NCBI GenBank assembly: GCA_002269645.1
Contig: NIVC01002785.1
Coordinates: 9,478-73,477 of the forward strand
Direction of reading: 5' to 3'
DNA: 64,000 bases
DNA from: Macrostomum lignano
Taxonomy: Eukaryota
A program made the translations under genes and the position numbers. Shown here piece by piece: positions 5,367 to 19,548 of the stretch (its first letter is position 1; every line of letters starts with the position of its first letter). The notes under the pieces are model-generated. The model ran no database searches, had not been told where the DNA came from, and worked only from the letters and a program-made list of their open reading frames with translations.

Positions 5367-5654
5367 CTACAGCTTGATGCAGCTGATGATCTGACTGGCG
5401 CTGCTGCCGCACTTGCTGGCCAGGCAGGCAGCCAGTTCGTTGATGTTGTTGCCATTGGAGACGAAGCAGACCAGCAGGCTGGTCACGATGCAGGTCACGG
5501 ATGTGATGCCGTTCTGCTGCAAGCAGATGGTGTCCAATCGGAGCACGGGAACGACCTCGTGAATGATGTCGTTCACGACCTCGTTCTTCTGCTCCGGAGT
5601 GTAGGCGGCGGCGGCAAAGGCCACGAGAGCGAACAGGCAGAGGAGCTTGTACAT
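5367..5654 (-). CDS. Secreted six-cysteine small protein, copy A (95 aa, most divergent)
   Basis: MYKLLCLFALVAFAAAA signal peptide, C-x10-C-x7-C-x13-C-x4-C-x9-C, intronless, homologous to four other copies. Confidence 0.9.
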   Translation of the reverse strand: MYKLLCLFALVAFAAAAYTPEQKNEVVNDIIHEVVPVLRLDTICLQQNGITSVTCIVTSLLVCFVSNGNNINELAACLASKCGSSASQIISCIKL

Positions 5655-6349
5655 GGCTGCTGAGCTGGGTGCTTTGGTGCTGATGGCACAGGCTTGGGTC
5701 CGTCGCTCAGTCAGCCTTTGCCCCCGAATGCATATTGAAATACTCCTAAATGTCTGAATAAGTCGCAGGTGACGCAGTTTTGATTGACCCCCCCCACTCC
5801 ACCGCAAATTGTTGGTCCGCCCACGGCCTGTCGGGTCAGACCGCTTGGCTGCTAAGTGACGGTGAGACACTGCCAGCTTTTCTACTGACGCCCTTTGTCA
5901 TGTTTTTTTTTCAAGTCAGCTGTCAAGATAATGCGGCTCGACTGTCAGCGTTCGCTTGCCGACTGCTAGTCGAATTTAGTAGTCGCATATTTTCTAAGCA
6001 GATTTTTCGACACTTTAAGAGCTTCATTCCGCAATTTGATCACAATGGGATCCATTATGCACAAACATGTAAGGGCGCATTTCTGTGACTACCAAAGTCT
6101 AATTATCTATTGTAGTGTGTTGTGAGCTATTTTGTCTTGAGGATCGGGGTTATCTTTGTCTACTTTTTACACACAAGGTTTTATTGGTCAGGGAGACATA
6201 ATCCCGTTATTCCAGCGTCTTTAAGGGGCTTCTAGTGTTTATAGAGTGTTTACATGCTCTTAAATGGTTCAAATATCTCAAAAGATGTACCAGTGTCTTC
6301 AAGTGTCATCAGAAAACTGCTAGTGGCTCTAATTAATTTCCAGCGTCTT

Positions 6350-6720
6350 TAGACAAGCGCCAGTGTCTAGTAAAATTCCAGTGTCTTTGAACTAGCCCAA
6401 TGTCTTTTGTCTAGCGCCAGTGTCTCTTGTCTAGCGCCAGTGTCTGTAGACTAGAACCAATATCTCTGGACACGTAGACACGTGCCAGTATCTCTAGACA
6501 TACGTCAGTGTCTCTAGACTAGCGCCAGTGTCTCTAGCCTAGCACCAGTGTCTCTAGCCTAGCACCAGTGTCTCTAGCCTAGCACCAGTGTCTCTAGCCT
6601 AGCACCAGTGTCTCTAGCCTAGCACCAGTGTCTGTAGACTAGCGCCAGTTTCTCTAGACAGGCGCCAATGTCTCTAGCTTAGCGTAGGTATCTCTAGACA
6701 AGCGCCGATGTCTGTAGATT
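6350..6720. repeat. 19-bp degenerate tandem repeat (ctagcaccagtgtctctag-like)
   Basis: Tandem units visible, most homogeneous at 6520-6640. Confidence 0.85.
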
Positions 6721-7070
6721 AGCGCTCAGGGACGTCGTCACCAGGGGAGACAGGGGGATATGCCAATGCTTTTTATCCCAGGACCACTAGCAAAAGAGGC
6801 TAGTGTTCTGCTATAGCCTCAGAACACAGGCTAGCAGAAATCAATAGTGAAATCAAGTGAAACCAAGAGTTTTCCTTCGGGCGACAAAATAAGTTTCGCC
6901 CCCCACGCCATAAAAATCCATGGAGGCACCCCTGCCAGCGCCAGTGTCCCTGAAAATAAGCGGCACTGTGTATATACTGGAATGCCACGGGGTGGGCACC
7001 TGGATTCGCTACCTGTCCGAGTATACGAGCTGTACAAATGCACAGTGCAAACCATTCACTGCTCTTCAGT

Positions 7071-16137: not shown

Positions 16138-16678
16138 TGGACCAATTTGCTTCAATTTGCGGTAATTTACTCGAGAAAATAAGGCGGCATGCTTGCAGCT
16201 CGTAGAACTGGATAGGTAAAACTTGGCGCACAAGATGGACAATTTACGACAAAAAGATAAAATGATCAATAAATATACTTCGCCAAAGTCCTGCTTTTTC
16301 AAAGGAATGCATCTCATTGTTGCACCTTTTTTACCCGAGCTGTCGGAGGGGTTTATTAACGGTGCTGAATTTGTCGGTCAATAGAACCTACCCTAATAGT
16401 TCAAGCGGTCGCAAAAACAGCTGAATCATCTTGCAAGAACATTCGAGAAGACATTAAGCTGAACCGCGACTGCAGGACAGTCAATCAATTTGAAGCGATA
16501 AGAAGTAGCTGCCTCTGGCAGGGCGTGGGCGGCGTGACAGGCCGAGACCGCGTCACCTGCAGCGCCACCAGCGGCACCATAAATGAGAGCCCAGCGACCG
16601 AGCCCGAGACCCAATCAGCAACTCAACCCAGCAGCCAGTCTCAAGAAGCCAGCAACCAAAGCACCCAGCTCAGCAGCC

Positions 16679-16966
16679 ATGTGCAAGCTCGTCTGCCTGT
16701 TCGCTCTCGTGGCCTTCGCCGCCGCCGCCTACACTCCGGAGCAGAAGAACGAGGTCGTGAACGACATCATTCACGAGGTCGTTCCCGTGCTCAGCATCGA
16801 CACCAACTGCCTGCAGCAGAACGGCATCAGCTCCGTGACGTGCCTGGTGAGCAACCTGATCACCTGCTTCTTCTCCAGCGGCACCAACATCAGCCAGCTG
16901 GCCGGCTGCCTGGCCAGCAAGTGCGGCGGCAACGCCATCCAGATCATCAGCTGCATCAAGCTGTAA
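16679..16966 (+). CDS. Secreted six-cysteine small protein, copy D (inverted relative to the others)
   Basis: Same architecture; CATAAAT at ~16578 and GCGTCACCTGC at 16550-16560. Confidence 0.9.
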   Translation: MCKLVCLFALVAFAAAAYTPEQKNEVVNDIIHEVVPVLSIDTNCLQQNGISSVTCLVSNLITCFFSSGTNISQLAGCLASKCGGNAIQIISCIKL

Positions 16967-19260
16967 ATGCTCTGCTGGCTGTGCTCTCAAAGATAGCTAG
17001 ATTTCAAATACACTTGACTACGTTGAAATCAGATTTAATACCTATTAATTCACTTGGTCTGTTGGTGGTTTTCAGTTTCGAATGACAAATTAGAGAAGCA
17101 GCTGAGTATCATCAGTCGCTGGTTTTGATGGCGATGAATTTGGTTAGAATGAGTGGCTATCTTATTAAGCTCGAATTCCTCATTGGAGTTTCTTTGTTTA
17201 TTGAAGTAATGTAGAGTAGGATCGACTGCTCATTAAACGGAACGGTTCCGTATTGGGTGCGGCAGTGGGTTGAGAGGCAGAATGGAGTCCTTGCAGCCAA
17301 TCGGCAACGAATATTGACAGCTCATATTTGTAAATTATCGCGTAAACAAGTGGGAAAGTTCCAATGTGCAATTGCTAGTCAGGATGAGTCCTTGAACTAG
17401 CGCTAAAATGACTGTGTATTTCCCAGCCTTCTACAGTCACTATATTGCTAGTTTCTTAAGGACAAAGTTAAAAGCATTCCACAGTGATTGATGGCATCTT
17501 AGCAGCTCCTCTTAAGCTATAAGCTTTAACCCTAACGCTAACTAAAACGCATGGCTTGTACGCTCGTCCATTGGAAGTGGGAGAGAACAAAAAAAGCAGC
17601 TCGTAGCGTCCTTTTAATTAGACGCATTGATCTTCTCGATGGCCTCCATCTTGAGTAGCATCCTATGACAGTTTTTCATGGCTTCATGGAGCCGCAATTG
17701 TCCAGGCAGATGCCGTCAAAGATACCCTGAAAGGACTCAGATCAGCCGTTTTAGTTGCTTTTGAAAGTAGAGATTTATTTTGTGGAGTGCGGCACACTGG
17801 GAAGCACGGGTGACGTGATTGGCTGCTGTTATAAGGTGCAATTTTTTCAGCCTTTTGTCTTTTTGTCTTTCAGCCTGCTTGGCTATATCTATCTTCTTTC
17901 TGCGTTCGTTAATTCAACAACAGAACAGACATAAAGGTACACAGGCCGGGCTTGTGCCATTGCACACCTTTGATGGCGACTCGCTTGTTAGAATATACCT
18001 ACTATCCCTTAAAATCCTTTCATAACATGTCATAAAATTATTCACTGTAAATTAAAAGTGGCTGAAAAAGTGGTCGAGAGGTGGCCGGTTGTAAGTGGCT
18101 GGTGAGGGACTGAAAGTGTCCTTCCTTCAGCCACTAAAAGTGACCCTCTTTTATGGCCACTTTTTAGCATTTTTTCAGCCGTTTTTCGACCCGCCGTATT
18201 ACACTTTACGGTCTCATTGTCTTAGGGTCTCCTTCCGGAGACTGCAGGTGCTGTACGATCTCTCCTGATAGAATTCTCAGTACTCTATGGTCCAACCATG
18301 GGCTTTGGAGCAACCAATAAGCAAAGCAGTTGATGACTTTGAAGTGCTTGGGAAGAGATGCGGACATGCCGGTGGTTCGGAACTCGCCAGAAAACATTTA
18401 AATACTGTGCGGGTTTTTTCCACGGAATTCCCGCGCGTATTCCAACGTATTTCCGCGGACTATCCTGGGACAGTACTCAAAGCCATTTTTCTATACACTA
18501 TTTTTATGAGATGCTCCAATTCGGCATCGGTGTTCTAGGCTTAATTTGTTCGTCTATCCTAGCTGAAGCGACAACACATGCAATTATGCCTCTCTTACTC
18601 TTTAAGAAGCAAGCAAGCCGGAAATTCGGTCAGCGAGCCGACGTCCCCGACCTGGTGCTGGCCCGGGAGCCGCTGACCCGGCTGCAGCTGGCGCCGCAAA
18701 CCCCGCCACCCCGGAGGACCTGTCGGTGCTCAGTCAGGGCGTTGTGCTGATGGACAGCCAGCGCCTCAGCGGCGATGACTGCGTTTATGTCAGCCCGACC
18801 GGCTGGCTGACTGTCGGCCTGCGGCTGGAGGCTAAAAGTGCAGTGTGACAGCCACACCAATGCGGTACTTCACTGTTATTGAACATGCTTTCTGAAGTCG
18901 CTTGTGCTTTTATTATTGTTATTATCATCGTAATTAATATTATTGACATTGTTATAACTGTTATTCATATTAGAATCTCATATACAGGTATTCTTGTTCA
19001 CATTCAATGCCTACAGTTAGAGCCGTGTCAGAAATATACAAAATACAGAGATTGAATCATAGGCCCGAAAAATGTACACTATGTGATTTGATGGAAACTG
19101 TACGCAGACACACACAGCTCACACGCTCACACAGGGTGTACATCGGCCCGGACTTTCTGATCGTCAGGCATGTACATGTACACTCTCTGTGCCTTGGCGT
19201 GTGAATGGCAGTTAATTAATAGATATTTCACCTGATTTGGTTATAGCCAAAGTGTATTTG

Positions 19261-19548
19261 TTACAGCTTGATGCAGCTGAGGATCTGGATGGCGCTGCCG
19301 CCTCACTTGCTGGCCAGACAGCCGGCCAGCTGGCTGATGTTGGTGCCGCTGGAGAAGAAGCAGGTGATCAGGTTGCTCACCAGGCACGTCACGGAGCTGA
19401 TGCCGTTCTGCTGCAGGCAGTTGGTGTCGATGCTGATCACGGGAACGACCTCGTGAATGATGTCGTTCACGACCTCGTTCTTCTGCTCCGGAGTGTAGGC
19501 GGCGGCGGCGAAGGCCACGAGAGCGAACAGGCAGACGAGCTTGCACAT
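19261..19548 (-). pseudogene. Secreted six-cysteine small protein, copy E, TGA at Cys5 and promoter lost
   Basis: In-frame TGA (19303-19305) replaces TGC, and homology continues to the normal stop. 5' homology ends ~87 nt upstream, before the TATA box. Confidence 0.75.

Follow-up and report, generated by a model that had tools for sequence, protein, structure and literature searches.

A cluster of intronless genes for secreted six-cysteine proteins in Macrostomum lignano, members of an apparently genus-restricted family

A 64,000-nt stretch of Macrostomum lignano DNA from contig NIVC01002785.1 (hereafter, the window) carries a cluster of short, closely similar open reading frames (ORFs), and raises the question of whether these are working genes, to which protein family they belong, and what their products do. 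They had been predicted, from the sequence alone, to form a five-copy family of unassigned secreted helical mini-proteins with six cysteines. The window holds exactly five copies, named c1 to c5, each a single-exon frame of 288 nt with 95 continuous codons. Four are intact genes and c5 is a promoterless, nonsense-mutated pseudogene. As far as the sequence searches reach, the family is restricted to the genus Macrostomum. Its genes are already deposited as hypothetical proteins and some paralogues stand, anonymous, in a published orthogroup, whereas the structure, promoter, cluster dynamics, and function of the family were previously undescribed.

The number and architecture of the copies agree with the original prediction. 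A 51-nt probe matched the window five times with 0 mismatches, compared to 0 matches expected by chance, and tblastn with every known subfamily found no sixth copy in the window. The view of the cluster as a five-gene family stands only in part, as c5 has a nonsense codon and no conserved promoter. This copy is 98.7% identical to c4, but the homology begins only 88 nt before the ATG, which is 12 nt downstream of the TATA position, and the conserved TATA, E-box, and GC-box are missing. Because these upstream elements are lost and a TGA stands at the Cys82 codon, c5 is read as a pseudogene. Decoding of the TGA as an amino acid was considered and rejected, as TGC is found in all other copies and paralogues and c5 is promoterless. 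Among the intact copies, c2 and c3 share 99.8% identity across 474 nt (9631-10104 versus 13896-14369) with unrelated flanks, and c1 corresponds to a syntenic model based on RNA-seq at positions 13064-13411 of the Mlig_3_7 contig NIVC01000671.1 (L005).

The shared unit is short, about 320-475 nt, or about 440-475 nt for the repeat that includes the promoter; it starts approximately 150-190 nt before the ATG and ends at the stop codon. Beyond it, the flanks and 3' untranslated regions (UTRs) of the copies cannot be aligned by self-BLAST. A tandem unit of 4.27 kb, suggested by spacings of 4267 and 4265 nt, was rejected because self-BLAST homology is confined to the short unit at each gene, and what lies between the copies is unrelated, namely a FANCL-type gene, a Tc3/mariner fragment, and a reverse transcriptase (RT) fragment. 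An origin by retrocopying was likewise rejected, since the homology takes in the promoter and ends at the stop codon without a poly(A) tract. Antisense ORFs, such as 5310-5663 on the plus strand, are regarded as a by-product of the high GC content at third codon positions (GC3), which is 0.89-0.95 in the family and 0.5-0.8 in most other long ORFs of the window.

The ORFs and their translations bear out the precursor that had been proposed, which has 95 aa and no intron. A signal peptide of 17 aa comes first, TPEQKNEVVNDIIHEVVPVL forms an acidic amphipathic helix behind it, and the precursor ends with a 57-aa hydrophobic domain in which the cysteines are spaced exactly C-x10-C-x7-C-x13-C-x4-C-x9-C-IKL. 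The signal peptide has the consensus M-[Y/C]-K-L-[V/L]-CLFALVAFAAAA, followed by YTPEQ, and its parts are evident from the sequence: an n-region MYK or MCK, an h-region LVCLFALVAF, and AAA before the Y. The hydrophobic core and the small residues found at positions -3 and -1 give the protein the form of a classical secretory precursor. The cleavage context ahead of Y-T is kept in c1-c5 and in the family proteins P0004, P0006, and P0007. All six cysteines are invariant down to 29-39% identity (alignments A4, A5, and A9) and probably form three disulfides.

The mature protein has 78 aa and a mass of 8.1-8.5 kDa in the subfamilies that bear the helix (approximately 8.3 kDa in the window). Its isoelectric point (pI) is 4.4-6.0, its grand average of hydropathy (GRAVY) is +0.3 to +0.67, and charged residues make up 10-13%, nearly all of them located in the N-terminal helix. 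Net charge at pH 7 ranges from -1.1 to -3.3, except for the P0008 type at +1.7. An antimicrobial role had been among the initial suggestions. Because they are acidic to neutral and unusually hydrophobic, these proteins are not classical cationic antimicrobial peptides.

AlphaFold2 with a nine-sequence alignment gave a model with a predicted local distance difference test (pLDDT) score of 83.1 and a predicted template modelling (pTM) score of 0.68; with four sequences, the pLDDT was 73. Helices are placed at residues 3-17, 25-30, 36-50, 54-65, and 69-73, and a two-residue bridge links the start of the core to the C-terminus. The model agrees with the expectation of helical proteins with secreted-type precursors. 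It predicts a very hydrophobic, weakly charged four-helix core after the N-terminal helix. The surface of this core would be largely uncharged, which would suit contact with lipids or membranes, or self-association.

Do these proteins belong to a family that is already characterised? An exhaustive HMMER search of 1.84 billion representatives returned, besides three repeat-protein artefacts, only M. lignano proteins: the paralogues P0003, P0006, P0007, and P0008, and the fused model P0009 through one of its domains. HMMER and three word-index searches found only M. lignano proteins and a single protein from Logan contigs of Sequence Read Archive (SRA) runs, and word-index searches with wider profiles, including the divergent paralogue described below, added nothing. 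For nine family members there was no Pfam match at E<=10, and a profile search of PDB sequences gave nothing meaningful. Foldseek searches of the PDB with the two AlphaFold2 models (pLDDT 73 and 83) had best E values of 1.5 and 3.4; with BFVD included, the best matches still lay at E about 0.75-3.4. The statement that the proteins match neither saposin nor another characterised family has therefore held in HMMER, Pfam, PDB sequence, hhalign, and Foldseek comparisons. The family is unassigned in this sense, although it is not new to the databases, where it occurs as hypothetical proteins and inside an orthogroup.

That orthogroup, OG0000285_1 (Wiberg et al. 2021), holds true homologues with the same six-cysteine scaffold. 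A profile of the window genes matched P0006 (Mlig029556) at E=3.7e-22 and P0008 at E=4e-11, and the 90% cluster of P0008 includes Mlig026862 proteins. The homologues differ from the window genes in being only 41-45% identical to c2, and the P0008 type also lacks the acidic N-terminal helix and has AT-rich codons. In the publication they are anonymous orthogroups without structure or function, and the subfamily of the window is absent from the published table. Two further family sequences were noted. One is an unannotated, more divergent member that follows the P0008 gene at a distance of 2 kb downstream (L003 10303-10635, plus strand); it begins MAESFRNILKVCVLIFALVSMGTAA and has the spacing C-x10-C-x8-C-x13-C-x4-C-x12-C with a charged C-terminal tail, and the scaffold therefore tolerates changed loop lengths. 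P0009 (UniRef A0A1I8GVX6, 979 aa, derived from WormBase) contains a truncated family domain at residues 116-188. We take it to be a chimeric gene prediction, as the remainder resembles ligand-gated channel and C-type lectin material.

Saposins deserve separate consideration, since UniProt automatically names the paralogues P0005, P0007, and P0029 "Saposin B-type domain-containing protein", presumably from PROSITE profile PS50015. The saposin-like proteins (SAPLIPs), which include saposins A-D, NK-lysin, amoebapores, caenopores, and trematode gut saposin-like proteins, are alike in being secreted and all-helical, with approximately 78-83 aa, six cysteines, and often an acidic character. They are often active on lipids or membranes. 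The family resembles them by composition and comes closest to amoebapore A, whose pI of 5.65 and GRAVY of 0.41 (for a reference sequence entered by hand) are near its own, as is the size. The segment C27-x10-C38 also matches the C3-x10-C4 of saposins. Saposins have the pattern C-x2/3-C...C-x~10-C...C-x5-C, and the disulfides C1-C6, C2-C5, and C3-C4 staple helix 1 to the C-terminus. In the family, the first 26 mature residues (helix 1) contain no cysteine, so the C1-C6 and C2-C5 staples cannot exist, and the P0008 subfamily is without the N-terminal helix entirely. The C-x10-C segment is the sole part of the cysteine pattern in common, and the family is far less charged than SAPLIPs, in which charged residues make up 22-31%.

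Profile comparisons point the same way. Pfam SapB_1 and SapB_2 were unmatched even at E<=10, hhalign gave a probability of 0.3% against an alignment of seven SAPLIPs (sequences entered by hand; the alignment shows the canonical cysteine pattern), and unfiltered hmmsearch (--max) gave approximately 0 bits. No saposin was among the PDB matches listed by Foldseek at E<=10 (40 and 34 for the two predicted models), and by this comparison neither model shows the saposin fold. That the family is a divergent member of the SAPLIP superfamily, as the automatic name implies, is highly improbable. Neither the sequences nor the models support saposin membership, and a likeness in function is possible.

TATA promoters had been proposed, and TATA-type elements are indeed conserved; an orthologue and a distantly related paralogue have them too. 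The intact copies c1-c4 share three upstream elements: a GC box, which reads GTGGGCGG in c1 and c4, the motif CGTCACCTGC at -120 to -128, and a TATA element, which is ATAAAT at -100 in c2-c4 and TATTTCAATAT at -88 in c1. The second motif, of the form CGTCA(C/G)CTGC, corresponds to half a cAMP response element plus an E-box. It occurs five times in the window, compared to 0.29 expected; the fifth match, at 27791, is regarded as chance because neither a TATA element nor a gene follows it. The same order of elements recurs in the orthologue from the Logan SRA contigs (L001/L002, 69% identical) and at the locus of the 45%-identical paralogue Mlig029556 (L004). In L001 and L004 it reads CGTCAGCTGCAG, 20-35 nt, and then CATAAAT or CATATAAAA; Mlig029556 thus has CGTCAGCTGCAG plus a TATA promoter in common with the window genes.

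Partial GenBank models start approximately 28-36 nt downstream of the TATA elements (approximately 28 nt for the c1 type, and approximately 33 nt from the ATAAAT of c2 for the partial model P0001), consistent with a start directed by TATA. The 5' UTR would be approximately 60-66 nt. A longer GenBank ORF of 127 aa (MRAQRPSP..., MRAQRPSPRPNQ...) is probably over-extended by 32 aa at the N-terminus, because its ATG sits within the ATAAATG of the TATA element (10016-10022, 14281-14287, and 16579-16585) and the partial models begin approximately 33 nt downstream. Copies c1 and c5 either lack this upstream ATG or have it out of frame, and the conserved protein start is M-[Y/C]-K-L. The orthologue L001 has an in-frame upstream ATG of its own, 23 codons before the conserved start and approximately 30 nt downstream of its TATA element, which is where a TATA-directed transcript would be expected to start. 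At the other end of the genes, AAATACA(C) or AATAAA/ATTAAA, a putative polyadenylation signal, lies 1-42 nt past each stop codon, also in L001. AAATACA(C) recurs in c1, c2, c4, c5, and L001, although the 3' UTRs are otherwise unalignable.

How the cluster changes over time can be followed by comparison with L005, which is collinear with window positions 3399-18185 at approximately 95-96% identity. Where the window has c1-c4, L005 has four single-exon models based on RNA. The variant found in c4 is not present at the syntenic position of this reference assembly; the slot holds a c2-like gene together with 320 nt of the c2 3' flank (L005 1651-2410; 97% identical to window 9312-10071). The replacement directly attests ectopic gene conversion within the cluster, and the protein variant of c4 and c5 is therefore specific to the haplotype or homeologue represented by the window. 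The near-identity of c2 and c3 inside unrelated flanks speaks for the same process. Synonymous divergence (dS) among the window paralogues is 0.04-0.08 in the first 38 codons and up to 0.26 in the rest (c1 versus c2-c4), compared to an equal 0.32-0.48 in both halves against the orthologue. Because the orthologue comparison is the same in both halves, the invariant 5' half reflects concerted evolution. Constraint at the RNA level was rejected as its cause, dS against the orthologue being normal there. Gene conversion thus homogenises the copies, chiefly across the 5' UTR and the initial ~115 nt of coding sequence (CDS).

The cysteine-rich domain behaves differently from the rest of the protein. 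Its ratio of nonsynonymous to synonymous divergence (dN/dS, omega) is 0.6-1.6 among paralogues and 0.66-0.83 against the orthologue, compared to 0.19-0.29 against the orthologue for the signal peptide and helix. This domain gathers amino-acid changes on a fixed cysteine scaffold. A separate observation concerns a 476-nt segment that is 77% identical between window positions 3975-4437 and 12831-13270, located 3' of c1 and 3' of c3, respectively. It is also present in L005 and may be a repeat element or the relic of an older segmental duplication.

Are the genes expressed, and where? BOX15 gene models come from a genome-guided RNA-seq assembly in which novel transcripts below 0.5 reads per kilobase per million (RPKM) were dropped, and IDs with the same prefix are 95% cd-hit clusters (PMC5730564). 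Near-identical copies of the window genes have such models and are accordingly transcribed; at least 12 of these cluster IDs belong to the window subfamily, spread over at least 8 contigs. Expression of the family is thus evident, and the further suggestion that it is high draws on the paralogues. Three OG0000285_1 subfamilies are listed in Table S1 of Wiberg et al. 2021 (PMC8662610, MBE 38:5685), all annotated "Testis region" and in the high-expression bin. They are ortho6 (Mlig029556.g1, P0006 type; 36 species, whole-worm expression -6.1, omega 0.26, 96 aligned codons), ortho7 (Mlig026862.g2, P0008 type; 38 species, -10.5, omega 0.30, 66 codons), and ortho8 (Mlig001827.g1, match unknown; 23 species, -5.2, omega 0.44, 97 codons). 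In ortho7, omega is 0.11 at 56% of sites and 1 at 42% (PMC8662610). Since the paralogues are annotated in this way and Mlig029556 shares the promoter module, we infer expression of the window genes in the part of the body that contains the testes.

The reading that we tentatively prefer is that these proteins are lipid- or membrane-active products of the secretory pathway of spermatids, destined for sperm granules or the sperm surface. The genes would be expressed in maturing spermatids, the secretory pathway would carry the proteins to granules or to the surface of sperm, and the disulfide-stabilised helical bundle may bind or perturb lipids or membranes. They would resemble saposin-like proteins and amoebapores in how they act, without common descent. 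Abalone sperm lysin and sp18 are secreted acrosomal sperm proteins with a five-helix bundle, duplicated and fast-evolving, which act without enzymatic activity on egg coats or membranes. They offer an analogy for the testis reading as a functional speculation only; lysin differs in being approximately 16 kDa, cationic, and without disulfides, and no homology was found. A more ambitious version holds that a new disulfide-stapled five-helix fold was born within Macrostomorpha, converged on saposin- or amoebapore-like membrane activity, and is packed in the dense granules of the acrosome-less sperm as a lytic or fusogenic tool for the interaction of sperm with eggs or partner tissue. This version is a long shot.

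Several points weigh against the spermatid reading. The proposed activity on lipids or membranes is suggested solely by composition and the predicted fold, the disulfide connectivity could not be extracted from the AlphaFold2 model, and Foldseek, hhalign, and hmmsearch gave no structural or sequence similarity to lipid-binding families. No pairwise dN/dS value was significantly above 1. Mlig001791, 013012, 018888, and nine other IDs are unmentioned in the main texts and supplements searched, which held no datum on the site of expression for the subfamily of the window. "Testis region" denotes a body slice and not a tissue, a caveat repeated by Brand et al. 2020. When Arbore et al. 2015 examined six testis-region candidates by in situ hybridisation, they found four in the testis centre, the site of spermatids, which favours the spermatid reading, and two in a subpopulation of gut cells at that level (PMC4490696). 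Moreover, signal peptides occur in 130 of 728 testis-region orthogroups, which is no enrichment (Brand et al. 2020), and a secreted protein is therefore roughly as likely to come from gland cells of the gut as from the testis.

A gut product is accordingly the strongest competitor. The proteins would be secreted by a subpopulation of specialised gut epithelial or gland cells at testis level into the gut lumen, where they would lyse, or extract lipids from, ingested diatoms and microbes. Their role would then be digestive or antimicrobial, comparable to the roles of amoebapores, caenopores, and trematode gut saposin-like proteins. Gut-expressed, membrane-lytic helical proteins with six cysteines are common in invertebrates. 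The classical signal peptide, the all-helical mature protein of 78 aa with six cysteines, the amoebapore-like pI and hydrophobicity, the very high expression of the paralogues, and the multicopy nature of the family would all fit such a role, as do the two gut-specific in situ hybridisation patterns just cited. On the other hand, both of those genes had the weakest testis-region enrichment, 2.55-2.89 versus 4.1-5.2 (PMC4490696), most testis-region transcripts overlap the germline annotation from fluorescence-activated cell sorting (FACS) and are taken as testicular (Brand et al. 2020), and no homology to SAPLIPs was found. We consider the gut role somewhat doubtful, and nearly as likely as the spermatid reading.

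Rather than acting on membranes, the proteins could be recognition or signalling ligands, such as sperm-coat, partner-manipulating, or pheromone-like molecules, which bind a protein receptor and have a surface diversified by sexual selection. The testis-region annotation of the paralogues, elevated dN/dS on a fixed cysteine scaffold, and the turnover of copy number and alleles between homeologous loci would be expected of such molecules. In ortho7, the sites at omega=1 (~42%) are joined by one site with a Bayes empirical Bayes (BEB) value of 0.99, but the branch-site test was non-significant after correction (q=0.42; PMC8662610). The genus-wide omega of 0.26-0.44 indicates purifying selection overall, very few residues on the surface of the core are charged, an unusual trait in a soluble ligand, and no receptor or partner is known; we regard this role as unlikely. 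Among known ligands, Euplotes Er pheromones and Aplysia attractin are likewise small, secreted, helical, and equipped with three disulfides. At 38-58 aa they are shorter, and their cysteine spacing is different. A search of PDB sequences, among which such structures are present, gave no match to them.

Very unlikely, in our judgement, is that the family provides a seminal-fluid protein of the prostate, a component of epidermal or rhabdite mucus, or a toxin. Small, secreted, cysteine-rich, multicopy proteins would be in keeping with any of these. The prostate or seminal-fluid option of the original prediction is disfavoured because the prostate glands, like the adhesive and cement glands, lie in the tail, whereas all three annotated subfamilies are assigned to the testis region. 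Epidermal genes would not be specific to a body region, and the protein is not cationic. An in situ screen of seminal-fluid genes offered no sequences or primers that could be matched to the family. A last comparison is with the hydrophobic ligand-binding proteins (HLBPs) and antigen B of cestodes, which are flatworm-restricted, multigene, secreted helical lipid carriers of approximately 8 kDa. These differ in that they are not rich in cysteine and their genes have an intron, and no sequence similarity appeared in any search.

The remainder of the window is varied (Table 1). Between c1 and c2, on the opposite strand, lies a gene for a FANCL-type E3 ligase (8677-9336, probably with 6847-7770, both plus strand; FANCL_C domain, E=3e-15), which is unrelated to the cysteine-rich family. 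A degenerate, frameshifted Tc3/mariner transposase (HTH_Tnp_Tc3_2, 7e-05) and RT fragments are found between the copies, and positions 11373-11897 are missing from the syntenic L005. Imperfect (GA)n tracts span 52678-54254 (1.6 kb) and 59555-64000 (>4.4 kb, running off the end of the window) and account for the extreme GC and AT skew there. Minisatellite arrays are unusually dense; their periods range over 10-48 nt, their copy numbers reach 95, and several yield long spurious ORFs.

Table 1. Positions of the gene copies, their promoter and 3' elements, and other features within the window
Feature	Positions	Strand	Remarks
c1	5367-5654	-	Intact 95-codon single-exon gene, Mlig013012 type; 74% aa identity to c2
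c2	9634-9921	-	Intact gene, Mlig001791 type; 98% identical to BOX15_Mlig001791g1/g4
c3	13899-14186	-	Intact; CDS 100% identical to c2
c4	16679-16966	+	Intact; only copy on opposite strand; 87% aa identity to c2
c5	19261-19548	-	Pseudogene; TGC>TGA at Cys82 codon (19303-19305)
c1 promoter	5732-5824	-	TATA-like TATTTCAATAT 5732-5742; CGTCACCTGC 5765-5774; GC box GTGGGCGG 5817-5824
c2 promoter	10016-10075	-	ATAAAT 10016-10021; CGTCACCTGC 10040-10049; GC-rich box 10068-10075
c3 promoter	14281-14340	-	ATAAAT 14281-14286; CGTCACCTGC 14305-14314; GC-rich box 14333-14340
c4 promoter	16525-16584	+	GC box GTGGGCGG 16525-16532; CGTCACCTGC 16551-16560; ATAAAT 16579-16584
c1 3' signals	5318-5329	-	ATTAAA and AAATACA, 37-42 nt after stop
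c2 3' AAATACA	9603-9609	-	24 nt after stop
c3 3' AATAAA	13870-13875	-	23 nt after stop
c4 3' AAATACA	17006-17012	+	39 nt after stop
Tc3/mariner and RT fragments	10372-11326, 14663-15498, 33260-33829	-	
Minisatellite arrays	1215-1448, 2879-3416, 6340-6725, 15963-16139, 20226-20523, 21024-21872, 22388-25290, 30255-30821, 34772-39727, 44907-50373		
Flavin amine-oxidase C-terminal exon	20533-21000	-	3e-14
CCDC85-family ORF	1430-2224	+	1.4e-06
Proline-rich 48-nt-repeat ORF	58017-58700	+	GC3 0.96; overlapping opposite-strand ORF without Pfam match

Multicopy families of secreted cysteine-rich proteins that are confined to one lineage and expressed in reproductive or gut tissue are well known, and orphan families of this type are common; here no mechanism is evident, and the fold is possibly new. 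If this is merely another orphan secreted protein, its value is confined to annotation, where the UniProt "Saposin B-type" labels look unsupported and the 127-aa GenBank models are probably mis-started. A structure would distinguish a new small disulfide-rich helical fold from a saposin altered beyond recognition. The conserved promoter of approximately 130 bp (GC box, CGTCA-E-box, and TATA) could serve as a compact, strong, cell-type-specific driver for transgenesis. Sexual selection, regeneration, and transgenesis are studied in M. lignano as a model, and the family is a concrete, tractable target in this worm. As a genus-restricted, very highly expressed secreted family at testis level, it is a natural candidate for a function in sperm or in digestion.

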